A stretch of 64,000 nt of DNA from Octopus bimaculoides (lineage: Eukaryota). Position 1 is the first letter of the stretch. Each line of letters opens with the position of its first letter. Where the stretch lies: the NCBI RefSeq assembly GCF_001194135.2, contig NC_068982.1:128781649-128845648 (forward strand), written 5' to 3'. The notes beneath the pieces are model-generated. The model had not been told where the DNA came from and searched no databases. It saw nothing but the letters and a program-made list of their open reading frames with translations. Made by a program: the position numbers and the translations under genes. Of this stretch, positions 9,201 through 61,922 are shown in pieces.

Positions 9201-12200
9201 ATCCAATTGTGTTTTGATATTTAACACATTCTAATTTAATAATGACTTAAGCTACATAATTTTCAGTAATTTAAATCCAGTAGATCAAAGTAAATGTTTT
9301 TTCTTTATAAATTGAATTGAATGCTCCTTGCAAATCACACAGAAATTTGCATAAACACATTCATACACATGTTTATATACACATAAGTTTTAGAGTAATT
9401 AGTGAAGCAGATTGTTAAAGAAGCGAGCATATCAAAGCAAATTAGAAAATATATTTGAGATAATAATGATAAAATTTTATCTATATATTTGATCTACATA
9501 CCAAATGGATGCCTTGCAAGAACAGGCTCAGGAATTTCGACGAAATCTCCAATACCATACTTATTTTTAGCAGCAACTTGAAAGAGATATTTGTTTCCTT
9601 CTCGAAGATTTTCTACAACATGTTCCAATATTACTGATTCACCTGCTTCTTGCCACATTCGTCGATTTTCTTCTCTCTTTTCAACAATATAAGCAGTGAT
9701 TGAACTACCTCCATTATCTTCAGGAACTTGCCATGTTAGTGTCATGTATTCAGCCAACACATCTTTGACTTGAAGGTCACGGACTGGACCTGGCTTGTCT
9801 AAAATATAGACCAATTATCTAACTAATGTCTAAATTCTAAATTCAGTCATATAACCTTCTGTGTAAAATAGCTAATATGATACAAGTTAAATAATAAACC
9901 AAATCCATGCAAGATAATTTGTTAATGTTGCAAAGCTTTTCTTAATGAATTATTTTTTTTTAATCAATGACTTGAATATTGATACATTTTGATGAAAGTA
10001 AATATTTCTTAATTCATTTTGTTATAAAATAATAGGTGATCAAAAACGTTCTTAGGTGTAATAAAATTGTTGTAAATAAGTGAAAATAAGCAGTAAGACA
10101 TGCAATAAATTGCCCAATATCATTACAAAGTCATTAGTTAAGTAAAAGCAAAGAAATAAAATGTATTTGTATTTTGTGTTGCCTATAGTAATGTATTATA
10201 ATTGCAATTGTTTTCAATGTATATAAGCCATTAAATCACTTCAAAATATTAAGTTTTATCAACATATTGAATGAATATACTTCTTAATGTTAAAGGCAAT
10301 AAAAGTGCTTTTCAAACAAAATATGATGAAGCTCCAAAGTATGAACACACAATTTAGAAATTCAAATGTCACTGTATATATCAAGAATGTCAAAGTTAAA
10401 GCATTGATTGCAGTTAAATCAGTATTTGAAGCATTAAACTTTAAGCATTAAAAGACATTTTTTATATTTAAGTAAATAAATATAAATGTCTTGTTGCCAA
10501 ACTTTGTCACAAACAACAATAAATATTGTAAATAATATGTTAGATAGTTACCTAGAACCTTTAATGTAATAGTGACATCAACTTTTCCAGCAGAATTCTC
10601 TAAGCAGAGTTTGTATTCACCAGAATCTGACCTTTTAACATTTTTGAAATTTATCTTGGTAACATCTGCAGAAGAGTCAACCAGTATCCTTGTTTTATCA
10701 AGTTCACTATCATTATGGAGCCAAGTGGCTTTCGGAATAGGAAAGCCAGAAAATGGTATTGAGACAGATGTATTTTCACCAGCTTTAATAGTAATAACTT
10801 CCTTGTATTTATCAGCCAAAGTGTACTCAGGAGCAACTAGAAGCAGAAGAAATACATTATTATTTTTCCATCAACATAGGGAAAAATATCATTTAAGTGT
10901 ATTTTACATGAAATATGGTTTTATTAAATTTGATAATATCAATTTTACCTTCAACAGATAGAGCAGCTTTTGTAGTTTTGTCTTTAACAGTCATGCTATA
11001 GTCAGCAACATCTTCAGGTTTCACACCCTTTATGATTAATTTGTGCACACAGCCTTCAACAACAATTTCATATTTTTTATTTGGTGTAATAGGTTTGCCC
11101 TTACAGAACCATTGAGCTTTCAAATTAGGACGATTTATCTCACATGTGAAAGTGGCTTCACCAGGAATCTTTTCAACGGTTTGATCTTCAAGTTCTTTGA
11201 TGAATTTGACTTCACCCTCTGTAAAATAATGAAGAATTTGTTACAGACTTATCAGATCTTGTTTACTTTGTTTATTTTGCAAAATTAGATTATGAGAAAA
11301 TGCATCTCTAAGTTTATTGGGGTTATTTTTTATATGGTTTTATATGTGCATGATACATACTTTATATGTGCAATACATATAAAATATGTATCATATATGT
11401 TTTATATATGTAATACATATTTCCAAATTCTTCTCCAACAAAATATGTATTCTATAATTCAATTTACAAATAAAGTTAATGTAAAAATTAGGAGTACCAG
11501 GAAAGTGGAAAGGTACTAAATAGCAGTTTGTGGAAACTAATTAAACAATAATAAACCACTAGATTGAAATAAAATATTACTTATCATAAAAATAGAAAAA
11601 TTAATTATGATAGCATATTTATGTCCAATTTCTATATGTAATTATTTACTTATAGATTCTTAATCATCCTCTAATAAAACAACAAATACACTATTAGGAA
11701 TTTTGCATTAGAAACAACATAGAAAATTGTAAGAATGAATCAGCTAAGTTTAACAATACTAAATCAAAAAGAAGTCTCAATCTGTATTTTGAAATGCTTC
11801 AACTAAGAGGCATTCTATTTACTTGGCTATGATCTAACCCTTTTGCTATCAACCTGCCTTTGGTTCTATGACATAAAATTCTTGTTTCAAAATTAAATTA
11901 TAATCTTCTGGTAGGATTTCATAGTTTATGATCCAAATACTAGCTTAATAATGATAAAGTTATTTTACTAAATTCTCCAGTATTTTCAAAATTAATTGAA
12001 ACAAAGGCAGAATATTTCGACAGAAATATAACAATCAAAGGTGTTGTAGAAAAATCAAACCTAATTAATAAGTTACTGTGACTTACCTTTCACTTTTACA
12101 AAAGCTTTTGTGGATTTATTCATTATTTTGAATTCATAATTTGCTTCATCATCAAGCTGTGCTTTTTGCACAATTAAAGTATGTTTCTTTTCTTCAACTG

Positions 12201-15200
12201 TGAAGTTGAAATGCGAGTCCTTTTCAATAACTTTTCCTGCTTTCATCCAACAACCAGTCACATTTGGTTTGGATACCTCGCATACCAAGAGAATGTCATC
12301 ATTTTCCATAACCTCTTGGTCTTTTAGAGGACTCAAAAATTCTAATGGCTCTTCTGGAAAATAAAATTGCAATTTATATTTAGAAAGTTTAATGGAAAGT
12401 TGTAGTTAATACTTAGTCTATATAGTAGGAATCTAATTTTAATGCTTAAAAATAAAAATATAAATTAATAATTTTATTAAACTTATTCAAATATTTATCT
12501 TCAGACTAGAAAAAAAAGTCTAGTTGAATTAATAGAATCATAAAGATAATGAACTTGGTGATAAAATAAATGACAGTATGACAACAAAATAATTCTAAAG
12601 CATAATCAAAGTAATTAATAATATAAATCACTAGAAACATGCGTAATATTAAGTTTTAAGAACTAATGTAGTTCCTAAAGCAAGAGAGAGGGACAAAATT
12701 AGAGAGAAGAATGAGTGTGTGTGTGTATGAGGGAGACAGCAAGACAATGTTAGAGAGGGAAAAGAGTAGAGGGAAGAAGGAATGAGAGAAAAGAGTGAGA
12801 AAGGAAAAGACAGGGTAAAAGAGCAACAGAGAGAAAGACTAATTCTATAGATCAATGTAAGCATAATTCCTTACATTCAATTGATTATTTCATTCCTTTT
12901 ATTTAGTGTCAAAATAATTATTGAGGAAGTTTATATAATTGAAGAATGGGAATCTCTAAATATATACCAGCATGCACATCTACCAGAATATTACTAAAAC
13001 ATTGATGATTTTATATTTCAGTCTTAGGATATTCGTGGGATCAGTTGTATTAATAATACACAAGTATATACATTTCCTTATTTTCATTATCTCATAAATT
13101 CCATGATTTATAATGAGGATAGCTACATGATAGTTATGAATACAGCTTCTAGAAATTAACCAAAATCAGATAACAAGAATAAATTTCAATTGACAGGACT
13201 AACAAAAATGAATTAAACAACAAATCAGAAATTAAAGAAAAAGAATTGCTGGTACAATAACTGCTCTTCTTTACAGACATTTATACCAAACTACTCGGAT
13301 CATACATTAGTCTATTATAGCATATTATATATTCTATTATATCAGAGTTTATTGATATATTTTTATTTTAATACAATAATTATTTGAATTTAATGCTTTC
13401 TTGTGTTTTGAGGATTTGGAAGAAAACTTAAAGAAAATTCAGTTGAAAAACAAAGGAAACTACTTCTGTGTTTAGCGATGATAAAAAAAATCTTTCCTTG
13501 AAATATGCCAAATAGGGAACAACTGTGTGTGTGTATATATATATATATNNNNNNNNNNNNNNNNNNNNNNNNNNNNNNNNNNNNNNNNNNNNNNNNNNNN
13601 NNNNNNNNNNNNNNNNNNNNNNNNNNNNNNNNNNNNNNNNNNNNNNNNNNNNNNNNNNNNNNNNNNNNNNNNNNNNNNNNNNNNNNNNNNNNNNNNNNNN
13701 NNNNNNNNNNNNNNNNNNNNNNNNNNNNNNNNNNNNNNNNNNNNNNNNNNNNNNNNNNNNNNNNNNNNNNNNNNNNNNNNNNNNNNNNNNNNNNNNNNNN
13801 NNNNNNNNNNNNNNNNNNNNNNNNNNNNNNNNNNNNNNNNNNNNNNNNNNNNNNNNNNNNNNNNNNNNNNNNNNNNNNNNNNNNNNNNNNNNNNNNNNNN
13901 NNNNNNNNNNNNNNNNNNNNNNNNNNNNNNNNNNNNNNNNNNNNNNNNNNNNNNNNNNNNNNNNNNNNNNNNNNNNNNNNNNNNNNNNNNNNNNNNNNNN
14001 NNNNNNNNNNNNNNNNNNNNNNNNNNNNNNNNNNNNNNNNNNNNNNNNNNNNNNNNNNNNNNNNNNNNNNNNNNNNNNNNNNNNNNNNNNNNNNNNNNNN
14101 NNNNNNNNNNNNNNNNNNNNNNNNNNNNNNNNNNNNNNNNNNNNNNNNNNNNNNNNNNNNNNNNNNNNNNNNNNNNNNNNNNNNNNNNNNNNNNNNNNNN
14201 NNNNNNNNNNNNNNNNNNNNNNNNNNNNNNNNNNNNNNNNNNNNNNNNNNNNNNNNNNNNNNNNNNNNNNNNNNNNNNNNNNNNNNNNNNNNNNNNNNNN
14301 NNNNNNNNNNNNNNNNNNNNNNNNNNNNNNNNNNNNNNNNNNNNNNNNNNNNNNNNNNNNNNNNNNNNNNNNNNNNNNNNNNNNNNNNNNNNNNNNNNNN
14401 NNNNNNNNNNNNNNNNNNNNNNNNNNNNNNNNNNNNNNNNNNNNNNNNNNNNNNNNNNNNNNNNNNNNNNNNNNNNNNNNNNNNNNNNNNNNNNNNNNNN
14501 NNNNNAAGAATTTGTTAAATCTGAAACTAGTTCCTGTTTAATAATGCTTTTTTAGGTGATTTTAAATGTCTTGCCCACTCACGTTTTTGGTATGCTGCTA
14601 TATTTCATGTTGAGAACAATTTAGGTCTTAATAGACACAAGATGTGATCTATTTCTAGCGCATTAATTGTCCACGTTAGTGGTCGACGTTATTTTTTGAA
14701 AAATGTACCTTAATCCCCTGAGATTGCAGATAATATTTCTGAATCTCTTTGATTCTTTAGATGTGCTGGCCTCCTGATAATTAATCGATATTAATTAATA
14801 TATGACTAATTACCAGATTTTATAATTATATATCAGTAATATATATATATATATCAGTAATATATTTAATATATGCTATAGGTTCAAAATTATATTAATA
14901 ATGGTGATTGACAAGAACACTTTTAGGTAATGATGAGATGAGTAAAGTTAAATATGTGTATTAACAGTTGTTGAAAATAATACAGTTTAGCTGTATACGT
15001 TTAGACAATAATTAAAGTAGTTTATCTTTCTCCTCCTAATTCACATGTAACTAATTAACTATACAAATATGAAGAAAAGATATTTCATGAGATGGAATTA
15101 TGAAACAATGCAATGTGATATTTAAATACAGTGTTAAAATGTTATCAAAATGCATGAAGGTTAGTATCTACATATTATTTCATTAATAAAGATACTTAAT

Positions 15201-18200
15201 ACTAATTATTTCTGAAATTCAAATACAAAACAGTGGAAGTTAATGTAAAAATAACAGAAAATAATACTTTTGTCAATCCATTGTAAGCCATGTTTGGCAT
15301 CTTGATTACTGTTTTGGCCATATCCTGCTCTTTGGCCATATTCTGCACTTTGGCCATATTCTGCACTTTGGCCATATTCTGCACTTTGGCCATATCCTGC
15401 TCTTTGGCCATATTCTGCACTTTGGCCATATTCTGCACTTTGGCCAATGTAATGATCATTAAATTGATCAATTTTAATGTCATGGCTAATATGTTGCTCA
15501 ACTGCTTGTTTAGCTTTATTGTCAACTGGCCAGTCATCCCCTTGATCAAGTTTATTAGTATCTTTTAAACTATAGTCTCTTTCATTTGCTTTTCGTATTT
15601 TCCGATCTAATTTGTCGTCTAGATTTTCACCATCTCTTAAAATAGCTTTATTACCAGATTCAAAATATTCTTTAGGTCTTCCTTCAGAACTCAAGTGATA
15701 ACTAGCTTTGCTACCTTCTATTTGATAAAAATCAGATTCTGTAACATCATTAGCTTTATGACAAATCCTAGTTTTATTTGATTTAAGTTTATGATCAACC
15801 TCATCTGAATCAATATTCAGCATTTCATTCTCTTCAGATCTTCTAACAAAATCACAAGGAGCATCAACATTTCTACTTGTATCTTTTGAGAGTTCTGACA
15901 GACCTGTTTGGTTGATGTCAAGATGGTCTTTTTTATTGTAACCTTTAGACATCTTTTGATCAACCAAATTAGTAACTTGATCAATTTCAGGGATGACCTT
16001 TTTGTCAACATCCTGATCAAAGTTCTGGTCAGTTGTGAGACTAATTTCTCTATCTGTAGCATTTGCAATTTCAGCCTCAGAACTGGCCTTTTGATCAGAG
16101 TCTTTCTTGACTTTGAATCTGATCTTTTGGTCAACTTCTCTACTAATTTTTTGTTGAGCCTCAAGATTAGACTCCAAGTCAGTGGATTTGCTTATTTGTT
16201 GATCAACGTGATAGCCACTATGATTTAGATCAAACTCATTGACATTATCTTTGCTATGGCCTTTCCTTTGTTGAATATCATCTTTAACTGGATAGTCAAT
16301 ATTTTGGTGCCTATTATGGCCAACATCTTGACCATCTTCTGAAAAAATAACAATTGATATTTGTGGCAAAGTGATTTGTATTTCTTTGTATGTTGCTGTG
16401 TTTAGAAAATAAAACTGGTAAGAAATAAACTAATGAAGCAATGATCAACAAAAAATATGATTAGAGTTTAAATAATTTGAAGAAAACCAAATAAAATTAT
16501 AATCCTCAATTGCAAGAGCGTGTGAGTGAAAGACATCTTTCATTATCTGTTACTGGTTTCAGTCAGTAAGCTGATACCATAACGGGGTACTAAAACCCTT
16601 GAAGAGTTTTAGTCAATCAAATTGACCTCAGTACTTGTTTTTTTTTTTTTTTTAAGTCTGGTATTTATTCTGTCAGTCTCCTTTTCTGAACCACTAATTT
16701 ACAGGGATGTAAGTAAACCAACACTGGTTATCAAGAGGTGGGAAGGTCAAACACAGACAGAAAACACTGATATACACACATACATATGTATGTATACATA
16801 TATATGATGGGCTTCCATATAGTTTCTGTCTATAAAATTTCCACAGCATTGGTTGGCCTGGGGCTAAGGCAGAAGACAATTGCCCAAGGTGTTGTGCAAT
16901 GAGACTGAAGTTGATACTATAAGACTGCAAAGCAAGCTTCCTATCACACAGCCATGCCTGTTGCACCTGATATCAAAGATATTGGATTTTTGCATTTGTT
17001 CAGCAAGGTTCTTGATACTCGTTACCCAACCAATGTAAATCTAAATTAAACTGCACATAGTTTAATTTCAAAAATATTTAAAGAAAATTAAACTAATTAA
17101 ATTGCTGATATTACAAATGTTATTCACAAATTATAACATTATTTTAAGGTGTGTTGAATTAAAATCATTACATTTTTCTAAATGTAAAAATGACAAATAA
17201 ATCTCATTTGAAAGCATTTATAACCTCAACATTAATTTTTAAAAAAACAAATTCAGCTTACAGTATATAACTATTTCTATACACCTTCCTTTTCTGAACT
17301 AATCAACTAGTGTTAAGAAAGCCAATCTGACCATAGTAGCATGAATTGTTAAAATAGTGGTGCTGGTACTGATGATGATGGTGGTGGTAATGACAGTGGT
17401 GGTGATGGTGGTGATGAAGGTAGTAAAGATGATAGTAGTGAAGTGACTGGTTGATTCATAACAATAATATTAATGTCAATGATGAGAAAGAAACAGTTTT
17501 CATAATGTTTATCTGTTATGAAACAATACACAACAAAATATTTTCAATGAAAGAATTTTCTTTGCAATCTTACTACTAACAATTATCAAAACTGTGCTGT
17601 AAGCCAAAAATACATAATATAAAGCGAAATAATCAATACACAATAAAAAAAAGAATGAATAATTTGTTTAGATATGTAACAAGTTAGGTAACAAAAATAA
17701 TATAAATATGAATAACCTACCATCAACCGTTAGAATTGCAGAGCTTTTTACACCATCCACCACAATAGTATACTCCCCTTCATCATCAAGTTCAGAGGGT
17801 TCAATGATCATTCTGTGAACACAACCATCCACAACAAGTTCAACTCGTTCACTACCACTAAAGATTTCTTTTTCAAACTTCCAAACTGCCTTTTTATTTG
17901 GTTTGTTAATTTCACATTCCATGACAGCTTTCTCTTTCTCCATAATTTTGATATCTTTAAGTGGTTTCAGGAACTGAACTGGTTCTTCTGCAAAATTTTT
18001 AAAAGAACTCACTATTATCAAAGAACAAATTTTATTTTTAAAAACTTCACTTTTTAAAAAAATATATATTGAGAAATGTTAGGAAAATGTATAATAGAGC
18101 CAACAACAACTAATAAAACAAAATAAACCATGTCAAAATAAGAATAATATTTGAATGATTAAAGACAAACTTGATTTCTGATAATTAGTGTTACCCATAA

Positions 18201-21200
18201 CATAATACTTCATTTTGATGCACAAATATAGATAAATTGTAACCTATTTGTAATATAATTTCATATTGCACAATCATGGACCACTAGAACAAAAATGTAC
18301 TTATTGATTTTTTCTGGGTATTGTTTATGGAAGAGGCTATGAGATAGTTATATGAGAAATTTGAAAATAAAAATAGTGTAACAGCAGTCATTGGATGAAC
18401 TAAGCGATTGACTGTTCAGAACAATATGGTTAGTGTAGAAGAATAAGGTGATGTATGCTAGCTTAAGATGTTAATGTATTATGTATATTGTACATTCATA
18501 ACACATACAAACACACAGACATTCATACAAATATCCTATAGATATAAATATTACAAAAAAAATAGTTTCTTATTAAATATTAGCAATATTTTGATATCTT
18601 CTAATATTTAAGAAGCTAGGAAAATATTTGCAATTTTAGATCAAATGAAATTACCATCCACAAAGAGAGTGGCTGTAGTCTCCACATCCCCAATACAACA
18701 AGAATAATCAGCTTCATCCATTAGAGCTGCTTCAGTAAAAATAATTTGGCGAGTAGAACCATCAGAGACAAATTTGATTTTGTCACTAGGTTTAATCTCT
18801 TTGCCATCTTTTTTCCATATAATGGTGGCATTTGGTTTTGTAACCTGGCACTCTAATATAGCTTCTTGTTTTTCAGTCACATGAACATCATTCAACGGTT
18901 TCTTGAATGCAGCAGGAAGTTCTAAAAATAAGAAAAGCATCAAATTGTAAAAGTTGCAAACATTGAAACTACTGAGAATGATTATTTCAGGCAGAAATAG
19001 ATGTCTTAATTGCAGGACAAGATATGATAGAATCATAACTGATGGTTTACTATACATGATGAATGATAAATGATAGTTTTAACCTGAGTTACTCGTTGGT
19101 TTCAGATGTTTATTAAGATAACATCGTTCTAAACTTTATTCTTCAGAGTAAATATATTAATGCAACTACATGAATGTTAAGACTATGATTGCTTTAAGAA
19201 CTTATATATAAATTTTATATATATATATATTTTATAAGGAAAACTATTCAACTTTCACCTAACATAAGCAATAAAAATTATTTGTATTTCCTTCTAACTC
19301 AATGCTATTAGCTTTCAGAGAAATTATTATTATATCATGTTTGCGTTAAAATATTCCATACAACAAATCCCTTTAAATAATAGAGATGGTTTTAAATATT
19401 AGGGCTTTTGTTATATTTTAACACTTATGAAATTGCATATTAAACGTAATCTATAGAACAATTTTTCACATAGTTTTTAATGTTTTCAACTTCTAAAATC
19501 ATCATTAAATAATACAATTAATAGTACCTTCAATAGTCAAGGTAGCTTTAGTTGAAACATCCCCACAAACACAGGTATATTCTGCTTTGTCATCTAGTGT
19601 GGTATCATGTATTATAAGCTTCTGTTGGAAACCATCAGTGATAATTTCAAAATGATCACTCGGTGTGATTTCTTTTCCATTCTTCAACCATTTAACAGTT
19701 GCATTTTCCTTTGTTAATTCGCATTTCAAGGTAGCAGTTTGCTTTTCTTTCACAGTTACATCCTTCAGATTTGTTTTAAATGTTGCTGGAAGTTCTGCAA
19801 AAAAATAATATTTTTTAATGAATAGAGAAAAATTATGCTTATTTTAAAATAAGAATATTAAAATGCATCTACAAGAAAGAAATACAAATAAGATTAAGGC
19901 ATCATTATATGGTATGTTCAAAAGAAAATGAATGTTGAGGTACAAAAAATTTAATTATATAATGTAAAAAATGTACTTCAATATTAAAAGAATTCAATTA
20001 TCAAATTTTTATCATAGCTATCTAAATTTACCTATGACTGTCAATTTAGCAGACACTTCATTTCCATTTGGTAAGACACATGTATATTCTTCTTGATCAT
20101 CCATAACAGCATCTGTAATAGTTAATTTCTGGATGCACTTGTCTGTAGACATAGTAATACGGTGACTTGATTTAAGAGTCTTCTTATTCTTCATCCATTG
20201 AACCTTTTTGTTAGGTTTGTTTAACTCACAAGTAAACTCAGCTGACTCAGTTTCTTTGATTGTCTTATCCTCCATGTCAGTGGTGAATACAAGTTCTTCT
20301 TCTGCACAAAAAAATTTGAATACAAAAAGAAATATTAGAAATGTATTTATTGTATATATTTCAAAGAACTCATAAACTTAATTGTATATACACTATAATC
20401 TTTCTCATTACAGTTTATATATATTTTCAGAAAATGAAATTACTATTCTTGTGCAAATACAGAGAATGAAATAAAATATTCAAATATATTTTGAAATTTG
20501 CTATAATAAAAATTATAGTTAAATAAATGAATAGCATTATTAATGTCATAGTAGACTCTATTTTAGGAATTCAACAAATTAATGATTTTATTTATAACTA
20601 GACACTTAACTGATGACTATTATAAGGTTTATTACATGAAATTCTAAATTCAAAGATTTAATATTATTATGTTTTCAATGAAAGAGTACTTCTTTCTAAT
20701 TAAAAAAATGTACAAATAAAACAAAATCACACATTTTGATAAACTACTGCAAATAGATATAAAAATATTATTTATACATTATACATTATGATAGGAGACC
20801 ATGCATCAACATTTATAGTAAAACTCAAGTGGTGACAGGGGAATGTGCCATTGGATTCACATGGCACCTTTCATTAAAGTAAAACACACTAATTGGTAAG
20901 ACAGGAATGGAAAATATTGGAAATTGTGAATTGTTTTGTAAGTAAACTTATAGGATTTGAGAGATAAGTTTGAATATTTGTGACAATTTTGTGCAAAGGG
21001 TAGAGATATACGTGAAATTTGGAAAGAAAATATATTTAGCTTGAGAATTTTCTGCTGAAAATTAGTACTGCAGAAGCATGCATTCATGATATATAAAATG
21101 ATACAGATGGGAAAATGAAATTTAGAAATTTAGTTAGGAAAATTAGCATGCTTCACAATATCAGCTATCAGTGCAAGGCATACATCATATTTAAGGTATT

Positions 21201-28644: not shown

Positions 28645-31486
28645 TGTGTGTGTGAGTGTGTGTGTATATAATATATATGTGGAGGGGCAATATGGCCCAG
28701 TGGTTAGGGCAGCAGACTAATGGTCATAGGACTGTGGTTTCAATTCCCAGGCCGGTTATTGTGAGTGTTTATTGAGTGAGAATACCTAAATCTCTCACTC
28801 TTTCTTCCTGTTTCTGCTGTACCTATATTTCAAAGGGCCAGACTTGTCACACTCTATTTCACGCTGAATCTCCCCAAGAACTACATTAAGGGTACACATG
28901 TCTGTGGAGTGCTCAGCCACTTACATGTTAATTTCACAAGCAGGCCGTTCTGTTGATCTGTTCAACTGGAACTCCCGTCATCGTAACCAATGGAGTGGCA
29001 CATATATATATACTCACACACACAAACATTTTTGTTTATCAAATCTATGAATAAGCAAATACATATAATGAGCACTTATCTTTTGTTTGTGTACCCATAC
29101 ATGAACACAAACACAGACATACAAATACACACACAGATTCCCAAACTCACATCATACAAATGTGTGTGTGTGTGTATGTGTGTTCAAAGTCATATTACAG
29201 TTTAGTTCAAACTATATTACAGTGAATGACCCAATTCTTTGGATAAGACATATTTCTACAGCAGAGTAGCTGGCTATAAAAAATGAATACAATCGAAAAA
29301 TATATATTTCAAAATCTCATGTATCTACACCTGCTTTAAAATATGATTATATATTAAGTCAACTTGAATTGAGAAAGATAAGTAATTTAAATATCTCTAC
29401 TTACGTTCTACGGACAATTTGGCTTCAGTCTTAATACTGCCATAGGCGCAAGACACAGCACCTTCATCTTTTGGACGGCATTTGGAAATAACCATAGTAT
29501 GAACTTTTCCATTAGCTTTGAAGTTATATTTAGGACTAGCCTCAATTTCTTCATCATGTATTTTCCAAGACACAATTACATCAGCAACAAATAGTTCGCA
29601 TTCGAATGTTGCGCATTCTCGTTCTTTTACTTCCACATTTTCTAATGGTCTCACCCATTTCCACTGAATTTGAAATAAATATGTAAATGCAATCACAATG
29701 TTTGATAAGAATATCAATTTCAATCATCACACCAATAAATTATAATAATACATAATAAAAGATTGAACAATTTTTACACTTATGTTACTCATCTATCTAA
29801 CATTATTTTCTTCCAAATAGAATTAATTTATAATCAAACATTTTTTTCTACACCTTCAAACCTTTATAGCATTATTCATTACTTTATAAGAAACATGGTT
29901 TTCATAATTTATGGAAAATCTCCCAGAGGAAATAAGTAAAACGTGTATGAATTTGATGAAGTTCTTGTATGTTTTAGATATTTTACATTTATGATAATGG
30001 TAAGAAAGTTTCAAATATTGCTAATATTTTTGATGTTTCCACTAAAAAATTCTCAATTACTCTTTCTAACAAATTTATCATTTTTCTCACCGTTTTCTTG
30101 ACAGTCTTGAAACCACCCTCTTCTATGGTAGCAGCATCTTTTTCTTTTGGTTTCTTTGCATATTTGTCTTCAGGTTTCTTTTTATCTTTCTCTTTTTCAT
30201 CCTTTCCAGGTTTCTTATCTACTTTAGCTAACTCAATGTCTTCACGTTTTTCAATATCATATGTTTTGTCTTTGAATTCATCCAACTAAAAACAAAAATA
30301 CATAAACATAATGAAAATAAAAGCGTAAAAACATGTATTTAAAATTTAAATCTTAAAATTAAAATGTAAAAACCTTAATCATAATATTAACATCTTGTTA
30401 TTATAAACAAAAAATAACATCCAGAAACTAAATAATCATTTCAATATTAATTTCAAAGATAATATTTTAATGGGCTTAATGATATTTTATACTTTGATAT
30501 CACCTTGATATTATAAAATTTAACTATGTATGTAGTATTAAATATGCTTCATTTATATACTGATTTTTAGAGTTAGCACATCTAACAAAAAATATAAATA
30601 GACATCCTTCAATAAATAAAATACAATCTTCACTCAGTAAGATATATAAAAATTCTACTTACTTCAGGCATATCTCTCTTCTTTAGATCATATGTTACTT
30701 CATCTGCTTCAATTTCCATAGTACGTTTGGTGGTATCAGTTTTAGTCAGCTCTTGTTCTTCCAGTTCAACCTTACGAAGGTTAATATCAAAGCCAGCATC
30801 TTCTTCAATTTCTCGTTCTTCTTGCTCCCTACATAAAACAGGTTTTAATATTATAAATTTTTATGAAATATTTATTCTCTATGCTAGTTAGTTTCTATGA
30901 TCATCAAACTTAATTCTATAAATGTTTTTCTCAGATTCAGTAATAAATTTTGAATTTTTAATGATTATGTAAATAAATAAATAAATATGTGTGTGTGTGT
31001 GTGTGTGTGTGTTAAATGAAATAAGATAACAAAGCCAAGGCCATGTGGAATTTTTAGGACATTCATAAAGAGAAAGTTAGTCTTACAGCTGTTTCTGGGA
31101 TATTAGGGATATCCCTTTATCAGAGATGATATGAGAGAGTTAAATAGAGGGAAATAGTAGAGTTCAATATAAGGAATTATTTTGGTAAAAGATAGATATA
31201 GGAAGTATAAAGGGAAATAAGAGAATAAAAGTAAAAATATATGTAGGATGTTACAGTTGCAATTCCATTGTCCAAGGAAAGTGCTGTATAGAAAGTGCTG
31301 TGTAAAATTCCACACAGCCTTGATTTTGTTGTCTCATTTTATTTAGCATATACATGCTCACACAAGACCCACATTAAGCTCCTCATTCGTATTACTATCA
31401 AACCAAGAGTCTAACTACGGTCCTTCCGTAGCACTTACATAGCCTTACCTGCCATCTTGGGTCTTCTGGATACCAATACCTCTTAT

Positions 31487-31570
<84 letters not shown>

Positions 31571-34500
31571 ATAAATAGATAGATAGATAGATAAATACAT
31601 GTATGTATATATGCATATAGATGCATGTATGTGTGTGGGGGCATGTGTGTAAATGTACATGCACAGAGCAGTTCTATTTCCTATTATGAAAGAAAAACCA
31701 TACAAAGAAATAAATATTTACAGCTTCAATAATTTTACCTGTGTTTTAAGCCGGCCTTCCAATCTGTTTCCTCCTCTTCCTTGTCTGTTACAATAAGAGT
31801 TGCTGGTGCAGATTCTGTTCCATGCTCATTGGTTAATGTTACAGTGTAAGTACCTGCATCTCCAGTTTTGGTTTTTTCCATCTTCATAACCTCTTCTCCT
31901 GTTTTTTCATCATAATAGATTTTAATACGTCCACCATCTTGAAGTTTCATCCATTTTCCTTTAGACCACTCAATTGTTGGTTTAGGTTCACCAGCAATCT
32001 TGCAACGGAATTCTGTGGTACCATCTTAAATTAAGAAATTTATAGAATATAAAATATACATGTAATTCTAAAGTAGAAACAGTTGTAATAAATTTGAATT
32101 TATGAGAATAAATATTTGCCTTTTCTTCGTTTTAATCAATAAATTTATTTCAAATACAAATAAGGTTTCTCTTTACTAATATGTAAACAGTTGTCTAACT
32201 TCTCTACAACAAGAAACATGTTCTTCCCTGATCCTTTCTTTCATACTTTTACCTCTTATCTGCAAGCATATGGGTTTATTGTCTTGCAAAATGCATGATG
32301 ACCTCACTAGGTTTGGTTGCATGAAAGAAGCACCCAGTGTACATTGTGAAATAGTTGGCATTAGGAAGGCATCCAGCCATAGAAACCATGCCAAAGAAGA
32401 CACTGTTCTTGAGCCCATCAAATCCTGTCAAACTGTTCAACCCTTCCCAGCATGAAACATTGATATTAAATGATGTTAATAATGATTACCTTCCAAAATT
32501 GTACATTTCTGAGGTACTTCAATGAACTCTGGTGCTCTGCCTCTAATATCAATCTTGGCTTCAGCAGAAGCATCTCCTCCTCTATTGGTTGCAACAGCTT
32601 TCAGTTTTCCTTTCAATTCAGGGCTAGCTTTATCAATGGTAAGAGTATATTCATCTTTCTTTGGAGAATCAAAATGAATAATGTCACTTTCTTTGAGTTC
32701 CATATCATTGATGTACCTAAAGATAACATAATTATACATTAGTACCATAAAAAATAAATGAATAAATGAAGAGAATGCTTTTATTTAAAAATATATTTTC
32801 ATGCAAAACTTGATAACAAATACATTTATATAAATTCTAAAATGGTTAGAAATATTTTCAAATATATTATATACTAACCAAGTAACAGTAGGCGATGGTT
32901 GTCCACTGACTTTACATTCAAATGTAACTGAACCATTTTCAGGTACCAATTTATCAACTGGTTTCTTGACAAAGGATGGCTTCTTAACAGCTGTTAATAT
33001 AAATTTATTATATAGAAATAATTGACAAAATTATACTAAAGTAATGTATACTTTTTCAAAACTAAATCACAGCCAAAAGAGCAACTATATATGCAGAAAA
33101 GAAACAGTTATACAGAATACAATGTATTGTAAAAGTAAACCATAATCTGAACATATATTCAGATATTTATTTAATGATTCAATAATCTTTTAAACTGAAT
33201 GTCTTTTAGTTACTATTGTTTTTGATAAACTATTGTTTTGGTGTTAAAGTTAAGTTTTTCCTCAAACCTAAAATAATTTGAATTTGAAAAATATGCCAAC
33301 TCCACAAATTAAGCAAGATATGTTCAGATATTCTCTTCTTTATTCACATTATCTTTATTCATTAGGCAACATGTTAAGTTTTGTATTACTTGATACAAGG
33401 AAATCTTCCAAAATATTATAAAATCAAAAAACAAAATCTTACGGATAACTTTCAAACGGCCATTACAAGCCATTTGACCAGCAGAATTTACAGCTCGAGC
33501 AGTAAACAGTCCGGCATCATCTGTAGAAACATACTTAAATTGCAATGTATGCTTATCATCTTCAACCAAAAACTTTATGTTGTCATCTTCAGTCAATTCT
33601 TTATTGCCTTTGAGCCTTTAATGTAAGAAAACATCATAAATATTAAAATTTTACATTAAGCCAATGAAAATAAAATTTTAATTTGACATTTAGATAATAA
33701 TTATTATTTTAAATTTCTAATTACAAATAAATTGTTTATTTGTTGAATGATAATATGTACCTGTAATACATTCTAATGGCAACTAAAATGTACAAAATTC
33801 TTCAGGAAGTAGAAAGGAAAAATTATAAAGTTAATTCTAACTCGGAATACACTGCCTCTGTTTCAATTAATTTTGAAAATAAGGAAACATTTAGCAAAAT
33901 ATTTTTGGCGTTATTAAGCAGGTGTCTGGGATCCAAATTAACATAAAATTTTGATGCAATATTTTAACTTAGATCACTTTAAAACAGGAAGTTTGTATCA
34001 TATAACAGTCAGTCTCAGGTGGATTTAGTTATCAAGGGGGTTAAAGTGTTATTTAAATATTGATTTCTAAAATTAGAACAAGTCTACAAATTTGGAGGAG
34101 ATACAAGCAACTAAAACAACCCTAGCATTTAACTGGAACTCTTGCATTTGAATATTAAAACAGAAACATGTTATGCCAATTGATATCTGTAGCATGAACA
34201 ATATAATTCATCAGCAATAAGGATTTCTAACTTTGGCATTAAGTTACAAATTCTGAGTTAGTGATGAAGCCATTGTAATCAACTTCAATGGTGGGAGAGA
34301 GAAAGGCAATGTGGATTGCAAAAGAATGTGAACTTGGAATATAAAAGGATTAGAATCACATCGTCAAGGCATATAAAACTGGTGACATACTGGTCTTGTC
34401 TCTCCACTACAAATTTTATGTTTTACTTGTTTCAGTCATTAGACGGTAGCCATGCTGGGGCACTACCTTGAATGGTTTTAGTCAACCAAATCAACTGCAG

Positions 34501-37500: not shown

Positions 37501-40500
37501 ATTAAGAATATGTATGTGATTTAATCAATTTTCACAGACTACATTTACTACTATTAATATTTAATGATATCAGCTTCAATATCGAAATCAAATGGAAATT
37601 GTAGCTGTGAACCCCGTGCCAGTGGCATGTAAAAAGCACCATCCAAACGTGGCCAATACCAGTTCCTCTGGCCCCTGTGTCTGTGGCACATAAAAAGCAC
37701 CCACTACACTCTCGGAGTGGTTGGCATTAGGAAGGGCATCCAGCTGTAGAAACACTGCCAGATCAGATTGGGGCCTGGTGCAGCCTCCTGGCTTTCCAGA
37801 CCCCAGTCAAACCATCCAACCCATGCCAGCATGGAAAATTGACGTTAAACAATGATGCTGATGCTGATAATGATGATGTAAAAGCTTAATAACCATTCTA
37901 ATAATAAAGTTGCTTGATTTTTCATAGTATTAATGTTTGAAGCCTTTTAATTTTACTATTCCTCATTGTCACTAAAGAACAGAGCTAAATTTATTCAAAT
38001 CGGTTGCCACTTGTATAAAAAATACAAATTTCAGAAATAATGTAATATCAAATATTGATACTCATGAAGCAATTATAATGAATGGATGTTTTTTCACTTA
38101 CTTTCAAAATCTACATAGCAATGATATTCTCATTGCTCATGTAGTAAATGAAATTAAAGTGAAATTTATTAATCTATAACTGAATGCTTCCTTTATATTC
38201 TGATGTGTTATTTCATATAATATGATAGGATGATTAAGAGAAAAAGATTTCCAAAACAAACAAAAATATATCTTACAGTAGATTCTGTGACATCTTCAAA
38301 CTTAGGTGGAATTTTAGCTTTTTCAACTGGTTCCTTCTTCTCATCTTTTGGTTTTTCTAAAATAATGATATGATACAGATATTATTATCATTATTAAATG
38401 ATAATAAAGTTTCACGATTTGTCATAGTTTGAATCACTTTAATTCTAATGCATATTTTTAAATCTCAGAATTAAGTTTTAAGCAAATTTTCACTTACATT
38501 TGAAATATGAAAAACCAAATTGAATTTACTTTTATCATACAACACATGAATCTATAACTTATTAAACAACAATATATTCTATAGGATTTAAAAAGAGAAA
38601 TTAAACTAGTAGATGTTATGGGGAAACATAATTGTCATCATTGTCATAACCATTGCAAAAAATTAAAAATAATAAACTTTTGAGAGTTAATGTTTGTTCT
38701 CCATCTTTTATATAATTGGTATATTACTAATTTTTATTATTCTTATTTACTCTACTAATCAAAATGATAAATGTATGCTAAGGATATCCCAAATACTGTT
38801 TATCAACTTACTACTAATTTATTATCTCAGTCTTTTGTTAATTTATTTATTTATTTTACTGAAGGTTAGTGTTATTTTACAATTAAAGGCAAGTTTCTAC
38901 AATAACTTTGAAATTATTGGATTCATCCCTAATTTACATCAAAGAATTCTTTATACCTGTCTTTCAACTTGTTATTTGTTATCTTTCACTAACCAAAACA
39001 TTCAATGCACTGCTATGATTCAGCACATTTTTTTCGCAGTTTTTTTTCTATTCATTCATTTCCATCAACTTTTAATATGAGGAGTGAAAGGTTAATAATC
39101 ACAATGGTTATGATTTCAATAATTCTACTCTAGATCATGAAGTAAATAACTATAAAACTTAGATAAATAGGAAGAGAAGAAAAATGTTTTGTCAAAGATA
39201 GATTTGTATATCATGGGTATTGTTCTCATCTCCCTATGATATAGACAGTTATCTGAATTTCCCCCTAAAAAGATAACCATTAATTTCCTTGGACTGAGGT
39301 GTTTATTTTTATTTAAAGAACACTATTCATGCTCAAAACTCCTCAGGCATATGAATTTCTAGGAATCTGAAAACTAAAAGCTTATTGTCTTTGTTAAATA
39401 GACAACTGAATAAAATACCAATAAAGTTGTTATTGTTTTTTAAACGCAACTTTAATTTTGGAAATAATATAACATCATCCCTTTAGTAATAATCCTACAC
39501 TACATGTACTATGCATAAGATCTCTAAAGTTATTATGCAATGTAAGTATGTTCTAGACTTTGATAGTATTGGTAATTTTGAATCTTTGTTTACTCAAATA
39601 TCGTCATAGAACACATTTCTAAACCATTTAAAATGCAAAAAGTGATTCTGAAAGGGAACAGATCATTATTAACAACAATTTTGACAAGATTAAGATTTGA
39701 GGGATTTCTACTGACCTTCAAGTGAAACGGTGGCTTCACATTCTGCAGAACCAGCAGGATTTGTGGCAACACATTTGTAAACACCAACTTCATTCTTGGA
39801 GAATTTGCTGGTTTTTAGTACACATACAGGGCCATCTTGTGTGAGCTTGGTAAGTGATGTTGGTTTAATTTCTTTGTTGTCTTTAAACCACTTAATAGTA
39901 GGTTTTGGTTCACCAGTTACCTTGCATTTCAGTTCCAAAACGTCATTAGGTTTAAGGGATACTGATTGGAAGATCTCTTCAAATTCTGGTTTCTTTTGCT
40001 CTGGCTTCTTTTCTTTTGGTTTTTCTTCCTCAAGTGTTATAGTAGCTTCACACTCAGCAGATCCAGCAGGGTTTGTAGCAACACATTTGTAAACACCAAC
40101 ATCATTCTTTGTGCATTTACTGGTTTTTAATATGCACACTTGGCCGTCTTGAGTAAGTTTGGTAATAGATGTTGGCTTAATTTCTTTGTTATCTTTAAAC
40201 CACTTGATGGTAGGTTTCGGTTCACCAGTTACCTTACATTTCAATTCCAAAATGTCGTTCACCTTGATGGTTGTTGAACTGAAGATCTCTTCAAATACAG
40301 GTTTCTTCTGCTCTGGTTTCTTTTCTTCTGGTTTCTTTTCCTCTGGTTTCTTTTCTGCTGGTTTTTCTTCTTCAAGTGAAACAGGAGCTTCACATTCAGC
40401 AGATCCAGCAGGGTTTGTTGCAACACATTTGTAAAGACCAATATCTGTCTTTGAAATCTTTGGTATTTTCAGAGTGCACTGTTGCCCATCTTGAGTTATA

Positions 40501-43500
40501 ACACTCTTAGATGTGTTTCTTATTTCTTTGCCATCCCTGATTATGAAACAAATAAAAATTAGATTAATAAAAATTTATCAGTACAAACTTATCATAGGAC
40601 TAATAAGCTCATAAAAAGCAGCAAGCAAGTGCTATAAGAAAGCACTGTGTATACTGTTGAGTGGTTGGCATTAGGAAACGCATCCAGCCATAGAAACCAA
40701 GCCAAAACAGACATTGGAGCATGATGCAGTCCTCCAACCTGTCAGATCCTGTCAAACCATCCATCCAATGTCAGCAACAGACATTAAGTGATGATGATGA
40801 TGGTGGCAGTGGTGAGTAAATAGGTGTTAAAAGGGTTACATATACTTACTTGAACCATTTCACAGTAGGCTTAGGTTCACCAGTAACTTTGCTTTCCAAC
40901 ACTAACTCTTCATTAACCTTCAGCACCTGAATCGTTAAAAGAAATTATTGATATTTATAAATTATTTTGAAGAAATTGTTAGAATGCTTTCTTCTAATTA
41001 ACTACTAGACTAATTGATAGTAGACATAATCACTAATTTGTGACAGAAAAGATCAATGGTGCCATTGATGTAATTGTTGTTCTTTTCTGCTTTAAGTTGC
41101 TGCTCCTAATGTCTAATATAATTTGTACTGAAACGTTTCAGCAGGTAATTAATAGGTTCAAGTTGGAAGATATATATTCTAAAAAAAGTGGATAACAACA
41201 GATATTTTAAGACATAATTATACTACAATTATTTTAATTGATATATATATTGACAGAAACTATTAATTGAAATATATGTTAACATTTTAACTTAGTGTTA
41301 AAATTGCCAATATAATGGATACTTACGGAAGGTTGAATGACTTCTTCGAATTCTGGTTTTACTTCTGTTAAGATTGAAAATAGAAGTTTAATTACATATT
41401 ATTATTCCATTTTTTCATAATTTAACTTAAGCAAATCTAAAAGCTAATTGAATTTAACATATAAAATTTAAATAGTAGATTACATTCAAGCTTATAAACC
41501 TTCTTTAAACCAGGAAACACTTTATAACTCTGGATATGTAAAATGTAATAAAGAAACATCATTTTTGTGTACATATATAATTGATACTAAGAACACAAAT
41601 AATGTTCTTAATTATAATTTTATTTGAATTTTTTGAAACATTTATTCTACTCTCTTTGAGCCAAAAATTTTCTATCTTGTGCAACATATTTAAGATGGAA
41701 TCTATGTAATATGCAAGATAAATCATGATATGACATATTCAATTAAAACCATATAATTATAGTACATGTTACTGTATTGTTTAACTCCAGGTCAGCCCCA
41801 ATTAATCAGGCCTATGATTAAAGACAATCCAGCATCAAGAAATTTTTTGTTGGGGGTAGGCAGTAGACTACATTATTCAATGTAATTTTCTTTAAGACAG
41901 TAGGATTTAAATTGAGGGATATTTGGCTGCTATTCCCAGCAAGATGAGCAATCACACGAAGTTCCCTTATTGGCTTGCAATGTACTACTATTTTTTATAA
42001 ATAGTATGGAATATGTGAAATATAATAATATTAATATAATACCAATATGATACTACAGACCTGCATTTCTAGAATATGGCCACATATACTCTCAAGCCTT
42101 ATTCTGTAGTATATAATTGAAAATAAAACTTCAAATAAAATACAGCAAGATGTAATCATTACAGTATATTGTAACTTACCATAGATATTAACAGGTGCTT
42201 CACATTCTGCTGAACCAGCGGAATTAGTTGCAACACATTTGTATACACCACTATCAGGTTTTGCAAATTTTAGTATTTTCAAAATGCAAACATCTTCCTC
42301 TGTTGAGATTTTATATTTGGAAGAAGTCTTTATTTCTTTGCCATCCCTATAAATAAAAATAAAGCCATTATATGAAAATATGTTATATTTCTTGTAGATT
42401 ATGTTTGTATCATATATTAATTAAATCTGCATTTTTTATCACTAGGAAGCTGAAAACTTCAATGGTAAAATAATTTATCATTCTTCCTTATACTCGTAAA
42501 TTTTGTTTCATGCATTACAACTGATAAAGGTATATTAAATAAATAAACATGTGATTTTATACATATCTTATATAAATGATGTACCTTTTGTTTTACAACC
42601 GTTGTTCAAAACTAATAACCATTTCTAACAATTTTGATTTAAAGATTTGTTTTTTCATAGACTAGTCAGGGAAAGAACGTTAACGACTATGACTTTTACA
42701 AGCCTTCCATGGCTGGTCACATTTATGTGGTTGATTTATCTCTTCAGTAAAATTATTGCTGGGATAATAATTTTAGAGAGCTGAGATTCTGGGCATGATG
42801 CAGAGGACAAAGTGTTTTGTATAAGTCCTAGAAAGTGATATACATTAAGGCTGATAAGAAGAATAATGAGAAGGTGGAGAGGCTATGCAGATAGCTTGTT
42901 TAGAAGAATGTATAGGATGTTTGTGTGCAGTAGCCTCACAGTCTCATGCATATGAGCAATACTCTGCTGTAGGTCTTAGTTGAGCCTTGAAGAGTATGAG
43001 TGATTAATCAGGGCTGAAACATTTTCTGACCCTAAAAAAGAAACTGATTCTTTATGACACAATTCTGGCAAAGCTTATATGTGGGTTTACTATGAATGAT
43101 GATCAGGGACTGTGAAGCTTAGCACTTGAAACAACTTTGTAAATTTTGTAAAAGATTGTTCATAATTAATAAGAGTGAAAAATAAACTTGTTTCCTGTTA
43201 TGCATGACAGAGATGAATATAGTTACACCTTTCTATAGCCCTTATACATTTGGGACTCTTATATTGAATTATCTTACTCCTGTTTTTGTACTTATTAAAG
43301 CATGTAAAAACTATAAACGTTGTTGACTTACTTGAACCATTTCACTGTAGGTTTGGGTTCACCAGTTACTTTACATCTCATTTCTACCTCTTCATCAGCT
43401 TTCTTTGTCTAAATTTCAAGCAAATATAAATTCCATGTATTATAAAATTCATAATATTAGTAGAATACAACAAATGTTAAAAAAATTACTGAAATAATGT

Positions 43501-49500: not shown

Positions 49501-52500
49501 TTTGATGGTCGGTTTGGGTTCACCAGTAACTTTGCACACCAAATTCAAACTTTCTTCATTTTTGATGCTCTGAAATGAAAATTAAAAATCAATGAATAAG
49601 CGTCTAACTATAAAAAGCAAAACTCAGATTTTACCAACATGTAAAAAAAATAATAAAAGGAAAAAAAAATTCATGATTCGGAATGAAATACTTACAGTTG
49701 GTTGAAGAACTTCTACAAATTCAGGTTTCTTCTGTTCTGGTTTGGCTTCCTTTGGTTTGTCTTCCCCAAGTGTGATAGTAGCTTCGCATTCAACTGAACC
49801 AGTGGAATTTGTAGCAACACACTTATAAACACCGACATCATTCTTAGTGAATTTAGTTGTTTTTAATACACATATAGTACCATCTTGAGTGATTTTGGTA
49901 AGTGTTGTTGGCTTAATTTCTTTGTTGTCTTTAAACCACTTAATGGTAGGCTTTGGTTCGCCTGTTACCTTACATTTCAGTTCCAATGGTTCATTCAATT
50001 TGATAGTGGCTGATGTGAAGATTTCTTCAAATTCAGGTTTGCGTGTCTTAGGCTTTTCTTCCTCAAGTGTAATAGTAGCTTCGCATTCAACTGAACCAGT
50101 GGAATTTGTAGCAATACACTTGTAAACACCCACATCATTCTTAGTGAATTTACTGGTTTTTAGAGTACATATAGTGCCATCTTGAGCAATCTTGGTAAGT
50201 GATGTTGGCTTAATTTCTTTGTTGTCTTTAAACCACTTAATGGTAGGCTTTGGTTCGCCTGTTACCTTACATTTCAGTTCCAATGGTTCATTCAATTTGA
50301 TATTGGCTGATGTGAAGATTTCTTCAAATTCAGGTTTGCGTTCCTTAGGCTTTTCTTCATCAAGTGTTATTGTTGCTTCACATTCAACAGAACCAGTGGA
50401 GTTTGTAGCAATACACTTGTAAACACCCACATCATTCTTAGTGAATTTGTTAGTTTTCAGAGTGTATACTGAGCCATCTTGAATAATTTTGGTGAGAGAG
50501 GTTTGTTTGATTTCCTTGTTGTCTTTAAACCACTTAATGGTAGGCTTTGGTTCACCTGTTACCTTACATTTCAGTTCCAATGGTTCGTTCAATTTGATAT
50601 TGGCTGATGTAAAGATTTCTTCAAATTCAGGTTTGCGTTCCTTAGGCTTTTCTTCATCAAGTGTAATAGTAGCTTCGCATTCAACAGAACCAGCAGTGTT
50701 TGTGACAACACACTTGTAAACACCAACATCATTCTTTGTGAATTTATTGGTTTTTAAAGTACACACTTCACCATCTTGAATAATTTTGGTAAGTGTGGTT
50801 GGCCTGATTTCTTTTCCATTCCTAAAAAAATATATAATTTTCTTGTATAACTACATAAACTATAATTTTCTTACATAACTACATAAGATATAGGAATATA
50901 AAGACTATATATCTATAATAAATATTAATTTATTTCAAATGGTAAGCAAATGAGTTTTGTTTTCCCATTATTAAATTTTTAAGAGAATATATGTCAATTC
51001 TAATATAATTATTAGTCATTTTCTCAGGGCTATTCATCACTGAGGAGGCTAAATCAGGCCAAAACACCAATGTCTGATGATCCCCTGATGTCATTTTTAA
51101 GACTCAAATTCCCTTAAGAGAAGTTTCTCTGAAACAAAATATTACAGCTAGAACTGTTCTATACTTGTATAAACACAGTAACTGTCACACACACCATTAT
51201 TTTAATCTAATGCTGTTTCAAGTGTGTATATTTAATTTAAACTTGTCCAGCTTCAGCACAAATCAATAACTGTTTTGTTTCTGATTTCTATATTGGAACT
51301 GGCATCTGATGATTTGCTGATAAGGAGTCTCTCTAAGATAGCTAGTGCCATTCTCTTTTTCTATGCACATTTTGTTATACATATAGTTATTTTAATTTAA
51401 TACTGTTTCAAGTATGTATGCTGAGAGAAGTTATAGCCTTAAAACAATTATCAGGTTTTATGAAACTTTGAATGATGAAACTGGACTAGATTACAAACAG
51501 AAGACTTTTATAACCAAATGTATTCATAGGGTCGGAATGAAAATACATTTTAAGAAAAAACATGAATGACAACAGACACTAACCATGAAAATAAATTATA
51601 AGTTGATTATATTTGAAGAAAAAACCTTCCTATTTCATTCATTATCATAATTCTCTTTAAATAAGTGTTGGTTGTGTTTATTCTTTATATCTTAATATTT
51701 CTATTCTTTCAAGTCAGAATTGAGATTGAAACTTTAATTTAAATTCTTGTAAAAAGCTACATTAATAAGATGATACTCACTTAAACCACTTGACAGTTGG
51801 CTTTGGTTCACCACTGAATTTGCACTTCAATTCCATACTGTCACTAACTTTGAAAGACTAAAAAAAAAAATAGACATAATATATAAATACAAATATAACA
51901 TAATGATAATACAATAAATATAATCAATAAAGAAATTATTAAATTGTGAAGAAGTTTTAAAATGTTTATAATGTTACTTACGGCTGAGTTAAATACCTCT
52001 TCAAGGACTGGTTTCTTCTTTAGGTCCTTTTTCTCTGTAAATTTACAAAGTGTATAAGTGTGAGAAAGCAATTGCAAAGCTATGAAAGAAATTAACATCA
52101 AATTGTTCATCATAAAATACAGAAAATTTATAATAATGGAAGTTTTTGCTGCTTCCCAATTCAGAGTCAAACAAAAGCATTCATACTTGTTTGGAAATAG
52201 ATGAAACATACCTGTGACTTTGACTTTACATGAAGTTGAAGACGAACCAACATTGTTAGTTGCTTTACATGTATATTCAGCAGTGTCTTGTTTTGTAACT
52301 TTATGGATGGTCATTGTATGAGTGGTTTCAGAACTTTCAATTGTGAAATGTTCAGATGGTTTAATTTGAACACCATTTTTGTACCTAGAAAGAAAGATGT
52401 TTAAACAGTTAATTTTTGTACGGGGTTATGAGTATCCACATTACTAAAAATATTATTAACATGAATGATTAAAGAATAAAAATGAAAACAAGAAAATATT

Positions 52501-61920: not shown

Positions 61921-61922
61921 CT

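Follow-up and report, generated by a model that had tools for sequence, protein, structure and literature searches.

Is the N2A element of titin, treated as a speciality of the vertebrate protein, foreshadowed in invertebrate muscle genes? The question is raised by a 64-kb stretch of the Octopus bimaculoides genome (contig NC_068982.1; the whole stretch analysed is here called the window), an AT-rich sequence of ~30% G+C whose minus strand carries dozens of immunoglobulin (Ig) and fibronectin type III (Fn3) exons. Our analysis indicates that the region is probably part of a giant titin-family muscle gene, and that four of its exons together form the likely invertebrate counterpart to the I80–UN2A–I81 block of vertebrate titin, minus the tri-helix bundle. 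The exon structure supports this correspondence more strongly than the sequence does. In vertebrates N2A serves as a hub for MARPs (CARP), calpain-3 and SMYD2 and harbours the mouse mdm mutation (PMC7312179, PMC8042602). An initial annotation of this DNA had proposed that this signalling hub is itself ancestral to bilaterians, a broader claim that we consider after the evidence for homology of the four-exon core.

The element in question consists of five minus-strand exons within 32716-29405, all bounded by AG and GT and together forming a single open frame of 377 amino acids; the last four are the core referred to here as the module. We designate the first Ig as Ig-A, the second as Ig-B, and the two insertion exons between the Ig folds as E2 and E3. 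The encoded order is the end of a preceding Ig, Ig-A, a 17-residue tail (DKEEEETDWKAGLKHR), E2, E3 and Ig-B, so that the charged insertion between the two Ig folds amounts to ~137 residues (17 from the tail, 55 from E2 and 65 from E3). The first exon (32490..32716, boundaries tttag/G...G/gtaatc) supplies the C-terminal half of the preceding Ig, continues through the linker GRAPEF into strand A of Ig-A (...PQKCTILE) and ends in phase 1; it is homologous to P0001, P0003 and P0153, and its vertebrate counterpart is a small exon with the linker and strand A of I80, ending ...VVE+A/gt. The main, I80-like exon of Ig-A (31739..32024) runs from strands A'/B to G and includes the C-terminal tail. It is followed by E2 (30663..30828), with 55 codons reading EQEEREIEEDAGFDINLRKVELEEQ...KKRDMPE, in the position of the vertebrate exon that encodes the tri-helix bundle, and by E3 (30091..30285), with 65 K/E/P-rich, PEVK-like codons (...KKPEDKYAKKPKEKD...), in the position of the second UN2A exon. 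The Ig-B exon (29405..29663) reads WKWVRPLENVEV...ATFECELF...KLSVE and is the counterpart of I81 by position and by phase. The peptides quoted in the initial annotation were located on the minus strand, and both ends of the interval that it had delimited, 32716 and 29405, proved to be exact exon ends. The vertebrate strings that it had given for comparison are also genuine, since the I80 string (KVGGDPIPNVKWTKGKWRQLNQGGR...NEHG) is present in a turtle titin fragment (P0016) and the I83 string (ATFECEVSFDDAIVTW...SQKYNFRNDGRCHYM) in the solved structure of titin I81-I83 (PDB 7AHS).

At the level of sequence, Ig-A matches vertebrate titin I80 specifically, as a reciprocal best hit. When turtle I80 with its tail was searched into the window, the Ig-A exon scored 61.2 bits and the next Ig 48.5; in the opposite direction, octopus Ig-A searched into a 20-kb mammal-like titin locus (L028) gave 60.1 bits for I80 versus 38.9 for the next domain. 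Per-domain phmmer comparison of Ig-A with the I80 of many vertebrates gave 52-59 bits, while the best Ig domain in the PDB reached 38.9. Vertebrate titin fragments spanning I80 through UN2A were found with an I81-I83 query (P0016 from turtle, P0009, P0010 and P0007), and all vertebrate matches in the profile search that bore informative names were called titin. Two motifs characterize this Ig type. KGKW is invariant in the alignment of Ig-A relatives, and a tail of the form D-[WLFI]-[KR]-x-x-L-K follows the last strand, 66-67 residues past KGKW, in most vertebrate and invertebrate hits (DLRAKLKK in vertebrates, DWKAxLKK in invertebrates). Each motif occurs once across the six frames of the window, with KGKW at 31962-31951 and the tail, as DWKAGLKH, at 31764-31741. 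The resemblance extends into the following exon, the first ~10 residues of which are common to both lineages (T-x-x-K-x-K-acidic). AlphaFold2 predicted the Ig-A fold confidently, with a predicted local distance difference test (pLDDT) score above 90. The domain of MyBP-C best matched by vertebrate I80 is C1 (residues 157-258); C1 was considered as a true relative of Ig-A and rejected, octopus Ig-A being closer to C10 than to C1.

The position and phase of introns provide a second kind of comparison. The Ig-A exon begins inside the domain, between strands A and B, with a phase 1 split codon 21 residues before KGKW. Both the split codon and its phase are identical in the window, an invertebrate contig (L001), a tetrapod locus (L003) and the mammal-like locus, as can be seen by comparing ...ILE/D/GTTEFRCK from the window with ...VVE/K/TTATFIAK from vertebrates (split codon between slashes). 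We considered that this might be the common strand-A intron of the tandem Igs encoded upstream and rejected that possibility, because the introns of those domains are of phase 0 and lie elsewhere, ~11 residues before the strand-B Cys as compared with 7 for Ig-A. From this intron onwards the phases in the window run 1→2 for Ig-A, 2→0 for E2, 0→0 for E3 and 0→1 for Ig-B. In the mammal-like locus they run 1→2 for I80, 2→0 for the tri-helix-bundle exon, 0→0 for the second UN2A exon and 0→1 for I81, after which I82 and both I83 exons revert to 1→1. Elsewhere in the window, 14 exons that each encode a whole Ig or Fn3 domain were checked and all are likewise 1→1, and the same four-exon pattern was present in five invertebrate contigs (L001, L002, L005, L006 and L009). 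On phases alone, with positions not counted, a chance match of the series would be expected in roughly 1 of 27 cases. Taken together, these observations strongly support homology of Ig-A–E2–E3–Ig-B with I80–UN2A–I81, and Ig-B is therefore the positional counterpart of I81 and not of I83.

The sequence of Ig-B places the domain in the I81-I83 subclass without singling out one member consistently. Its best match among solved structures is PDB 7AHS, within which I83 scored 49.4 bits, I82 35.6 and I81 25.9, and in the mammal-like locus the corresponding scores were 60.8, 49.7 and 40.8, with neighbouring I-band Igs below 20. In the converse search, human I83 retrieved Ig-B from the window at 61.6 bits and the next Ig at 46.6; I81 and I82 matched window Igs other than Ig-B. 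The five best vertebrate matches of octopus Ig-B are all I83, the closest of them sharing 43-48% of residues. Its equivalents in other invertebrates do not agree on a single partner and are closest to I83, I82 or the unrelated I9. We do not regard the similarity between Ig-B and I83 as unique evidence, because an unrelated Ig of the window (19508-19843) is likewise 44% identical to human I10, with a score of 74 bits. I81-I83 may be duplicates of one ancestral Ig-B.

The insertion itself yielded fewer matches. In a phmmer search of 1.84 billion proteins it found two invertebrate fragments alone, P0153 and P0003, and zero vertebrate proteins, and it had no match in the PDB at E≤10. When alignments of the tail plus the following exon from invertebrates and vertebrates were compared by hhalign, the first 18 columns matched (DWKAxLKxxxxKEKxxEE and DLRAKLKKTPSKQKxxEE, P=0.004). 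A Φ-D-Φ-x-L-[KR]-[KN]-V motif located 11-13 residues into E2 was aligned by MAFFT with helix 1 of the bundle, an alignment that we take as only suggestive. In the AlphaFold2 model the tail and E2 (residues 98-159) form a single long helix at low confidence (pLDDT 55-73) and not a bundle; for E3 the pLDDT fell below 50, which corresponds to a disordered stretch.

The module is present in several invertebrate contigs, among which the insertion is conserved, E2 being recognizable in P0003, P0153, L001, L002, L005, L006 and L009. Some relatives carry a PKA-type RRxS motif at the very end of E2, namely L005 (~2370-2390, AKRRPSD) and L006 (~1640-1660), L015 and L017 (GPRRQSVL), and a KYERQ.KP motif was found in E3 of L009 and P0003. 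The octopus E2 ends in KKRDMPE and has no RRxS. In both P0003 and P0153 the Ig-A, E2 and E3 exons are spliced together, but the sequence then runs past the E3 donor into what resembles an intron; a retained intron or an alternative 3' terminus beyond the insertion could account for this. In L001 part of the Ig-A exon, from its 3' end, is repeated in tandem (10288-10554, ..TCSATLIVKEEEARDWKAQLKK..) just downstream of the real exon, and a 1,352-aa unique open reading frame is found two Igs past the module.

Several results weigh against the proposed homology or restrict its extent. In sequence Ig-B is nearer to I83 or I82 than to I81, and it has neither the BC-loop insertion of I81 (INYPEI) nor the long FG hairpin of I83 (RLEPRGEARS). 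Two exon boundaries, on the 3' side of the Ig-A exon and the 5' side of the Ig-B exon, are each shifted by one codon relative to the vertebrate positions. The hhalign match between the insertions ends after 18 columns and has a probability of just 8.8%, and E3 showed no similarity to the second UN2A exon by the same method (P=0.27). The tri-helix bundle (Pfam THB, PF18362; PDB 7NIP), which is the structured core of UN2A and is common to the M domain of MyBP-C, was sought in several ways. With a cutoff as lenient as E≤10, the Pfam model recognized THB in the turtle fragment but in neither the octopus protein nor P0003; a hidden Markov model built from the titin and MyBP-C bundles detected none in six frames of the window or in L001 and L002, with control loci scoring 108 bits; and UN2A searched into the window by tblastn returned nothing at E≤10, tblastn with the mammal-like locus likewise giving no bundle match. 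By every test the UN2A bundle is absent from the octopus module. As to scope, the vertebrate titin compared comprised fragments, the mammal-like locus and PDB domains, which represent some but not all titin Igs, and the octopus exons were modelled from genomic sequence, so that their splicing is a prediction. The hinge function suggested below draws on composition and on a low-confidence model.

On the reading that we favour, a homologue of I80–UN2A–I81 without the bundle, E2 would contribute to the insertion a charged segment, probably a single alpha-helix, and E3 about 65 disordered, PEVK-like residues. Framed by two stable Igs, this linker would most likely give the elastic I-band part of a giant sarcomeric protein a short extensible spacer or hinge, with the strongly conserved Ig-A and its tail providing a docking or capping surface, and in some relatives the RRxS motif at the end of E2 could place the linker under kinase control. 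The tri-helix bundle and I82/I83 would then have been added, in the vertebrate or at least the chordate lineage, to an older Ig–linker–Ig scaffold.

The module lies within a long succession of similar exons. In 5' to 3' order on the minus strand, the window contains a giant unique exon, at least 18 tandem Igs, the module, eleven Igs and a set of A-band-type domains. The giant exon (58021-61968, continuing to ~57531) encodes more than 1,300 amino acids and is built of 141-nt (47-aa) repeats (11.7 copies) together with 42-nt (14-aa, EEEKPVDTEVAFQI) repeats in at least 12 copies; it resembles a spring segment, PEVK-like or unique, placed before the tandem Igs. The tandem Igs are joined by short P/E/K-rich linkers. 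Two multi-Ig exons (49627-50850 and 39711-40574, both on the minus strand) show a 297-nt (99-aa) period of Ig plus linker, the linker reading EEKPKERKPEFEEIF, and between them similar Igs are each divided among three exons, with phase-0 introns after strand A. The eleven Igs downstream of the module are of the I81-I83/obscurin-like type, and there is no PEVK segment directly downstream of the module, that position being occupied by the Ig exons; E3, inside the module, is the sole PEVK-like part there. Nine A-band-type domains are visible, in the order Ig, Fn, Fn, Fn, Ig, Ig, Fn, Fn, Fn, and the Fn3 triplet is collinear with the titin Fn3 triplet 8BNQ (213.7 bits). The I-band-type and A-band-type Ig/Fn3 exons are on one strand and have compatible phases; the reading of these exons as one gene is drawn from genomic sequence.

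Some further features of the window were noted. A 407-aa open frame on the minus strand (15209-16429), hydrophilic and unique in sequence, ends in GQSAEY repeats; it lies between Ig exons and may be a unique-sequence exon. Runs of N mark assembly gaps at 4714-4790, 13549-14505 and 58027-58190, the last of which interrupts the giant repeat exon, and another gap is intronic within the Ig tract. Between Ig-A and E2, the 910-nt intron contains (GATA)n and (GT)n microsatellites (31450-31590 and 30985-31010), and the intron upstream of Ig-A (32150-32490) holds a weak interspersed repeat with other copies at 40647-40716 and 37692-37760. The four core exons (29405-32024, minus strand) sum to 906 nt from phase 1 to phase 1 and could be skipped as a block with the frame kept; E3 by itself (195 nt) is also frame-neutral. 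Frame-neutral skipping of the octopus module would parallel the skipping of N2A in vertebrate N2B titin.

Among other explanations, the one that survives best, although we consider it unlikely, is that the module represents the N-terminal junction at which a unique linker separates two Ig tracts in proteins of twitchin/projectin type, and that the gene is a twitchin/projectin orthologue. In Mytilus twitchin the linker that joins Ig7 to Ig8 contains a PKA site, D1 (PMC12040844), and projectin is organized as N8Ig–PEVK–NTCS-1–N6Ig–[Fn-Fn-Ig] (PMC3835035); the local layout in octopus fits both published descriptions. The PEVK-like E3, the Fn3 domains downstream of the Ig tract and the RRxS motifs of the four relatives listed above are all in keeping with such an origin, and the KYERQ.KP motif recalls the 'YERP' motif of projectin. 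However, the octopus module is preceded by the giant unique exon and at least 18 Igs instead of 7-8 Igs, and followed by eleven Igs, not six. The octopus E2 lacks the RRxS motif, and the visible A-band-type domains read Fn-Fn-Fn-Ig-Ig-Fn-Fn-Fn (among the nine seen), not Fn-Fn-Ig, with an Fn3 triplet collinear with that of titin. A twitchin/projectin assignment is nonetheless compatible with homology to I80–UN2A–I81, in which case vertebrate titin from N2A onward would correspond to projectin/twitchin. The C-terminal MLCK-type kinase domain of twitchin/projectin and of titin falls beyond the 64 kb covered by the window.

A further reading, close to that of the initial annotation and in our view improbable, holds that the octopus module is a complete N2A-like hub, ancestral to bilaterians, whose I80-like and I83-like Igs and UN2A-like insertion bind MARPs and calpain-3, and that its presence marks the gene as the true orthologue of titin. 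The similarities to I80 and I83 on which it draws are real, the order of unique repeats, tandem Igs, module, Ig tract and Ig/Fn3 region agrees with it, and the calpain-3 site, which in vertebrates is formed by I80–UN2A (PMC8042602), coincides with the best-conserved part of the octopus module. CARP, however, binds UN2A–I81 (PMC8042602), and the octopus protein has neither the bundle nor the special loop of I81; moreover, the phases make the second Ig the counterpart of I81, with a preference for I83 that is inconsistent among invertebrates. MARP-type docking is thus unlikely to be conserved in the octopus module, because the element that carries the bundle is absent from it. These results divide the claims of the initial annotation. 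Of the affinity it saw to I80 and I83, the first half is specific and stands, whereas the second Ig is I81 by position and phase. Its N2A-like element corresponds to vertebrate N2A over the I80–linker–Ig part, but with one Ig in place of three, and the parallel that it drew with the order of the vertebrate I-band holds loosely, failing where a PEVK segment should follow the module. The structure prediction that it suggested for the insertion gave, at low confidence, a single long helix instead of the UN2A bundle. An N2A signalling hub ancestral to bilaterians is not supported, the insertion being UN2A-like over its first ~18 residues alone; an Ig–linker–Ig scaffold of I80 type that predates vertebrates is supported.

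Chance or convergence among many similar muscle Igs, without specific N2A homology, could draw on the fact that Igs of the same subclass score alike without matching in position (as in the I10 example above) and on the lack of significant similarity between the insertion and UN2A, but it is very improbable in view of the constant distance between KGKW and the tail in most hits from vertebrates and invertebrates alike, the identical intron codon and phase, and a four-exon phase series shared where other domain exons are 1→1.

Returning to homology with I80–UN2A–I81, the rare exon-phase signature common to the octopus gene and mammalian titin offers a positional marker for titin-family genes. 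According to a 2025 analysis, it is not yet settled which invertebrate protein is the counterpart of vertebrate titin, the candidates being I-connectin/Sls, projectin/twitchin or the two together (PMC12198301). The marker can be searched for in every annotated titin-family gene, and the question of titin orthology thereby becomes directly testable. Tentatively, and as a joint proposal, we suggest that the I80–linker–I81 block with its odd phases might be a bilaterian-wide landmark of the titin family, that the bundle might have been built or swapped into a pre-existing 2→0 exon in chordates or vertebrates, and that the PKA-regulated linker of catch-muscle twitchin and the N2A hub might be two elaborations of one ancestral regulatory hinge. 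If this is true, invertebrate and vertebrate titins would be alignable position by position, which would bear on the idea that vertebrate titin is a fusion of an Sls-like and a projectin-like gene. On the reading that we favour, irrespective of this wider proposal, the old parts are the I80-type Ig, its tail and the Ig–linker–Ig hinge, and the new parts the tri-helix bundle and I82/I83, a division that guides where the origin of MARP signalling should be sought. We found no N2A counterpart described in invertebrates in the literature searched, the coverage of which was incomplete, so that a prior description is possible.

The octopus gene can be set beside several known systems. In domain layout, the upstream part of the window, where tandem Igs are spaced by short P/E/K-rich linkers and accompanied by long unique repeats, resembles Drosophila Sallimus/kettin and crayfish I-connectin; the octopus repeat period, in contrast, is 99 aa and not ~130 aa, and a titin-type Ig/Fn3 region lies on the same strand. 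MyBP-C shares the Ig–linker–Ig arrangement in C1–M–C2, and in vertebrates C1–M–C2 parallels I80–UN2A–I81, the M domain and UN2A having the bundle in common (PDB 8G4L chain bo), but the octopus module, with no bundle and with Ig-A nearer to C10, is not a member of this group. The D1 region of twitchin and the PEVK–NTCS-1 region of projectin are comparable, on published descriptions alone, in having a charged, PEVK-like unique linker between N-terminal Ig tracts and upstream of an Ig/Fn3 region; in some invertebrate relatives a PKA-type RRxS and a YER-type motif in E3 add to this likeness, with the octopus itself lacking RRxS. The octopus gene differs from twitchin and projectin in its many more upstream Igs, in having 11 as against ~6 Igs downstream, and in Fn-Fn-Fn as against Fn-Fn-Ig. 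From vertebrate N2A the octopus module differs in the missing tri-helix bundle, in an insertion whose remainder has no detectable similarity, in a single 0→1 Ig followed by ordinary 1→1 Igs where vertebrates have the three domains I81–I83, and in the continuation into further Igs where the vertebrate protein continues into PEVK. What the two have in common is an I80-type Ig with KGKW and a D-x-[KR]-x-x-L-K-K tail, the intron between strands A and B, the phase series, and a unique insertion of ~100-140 residues that starts T-x-x-K-x-K-acidic and leads into an Ig of the I81-I83 subclass.

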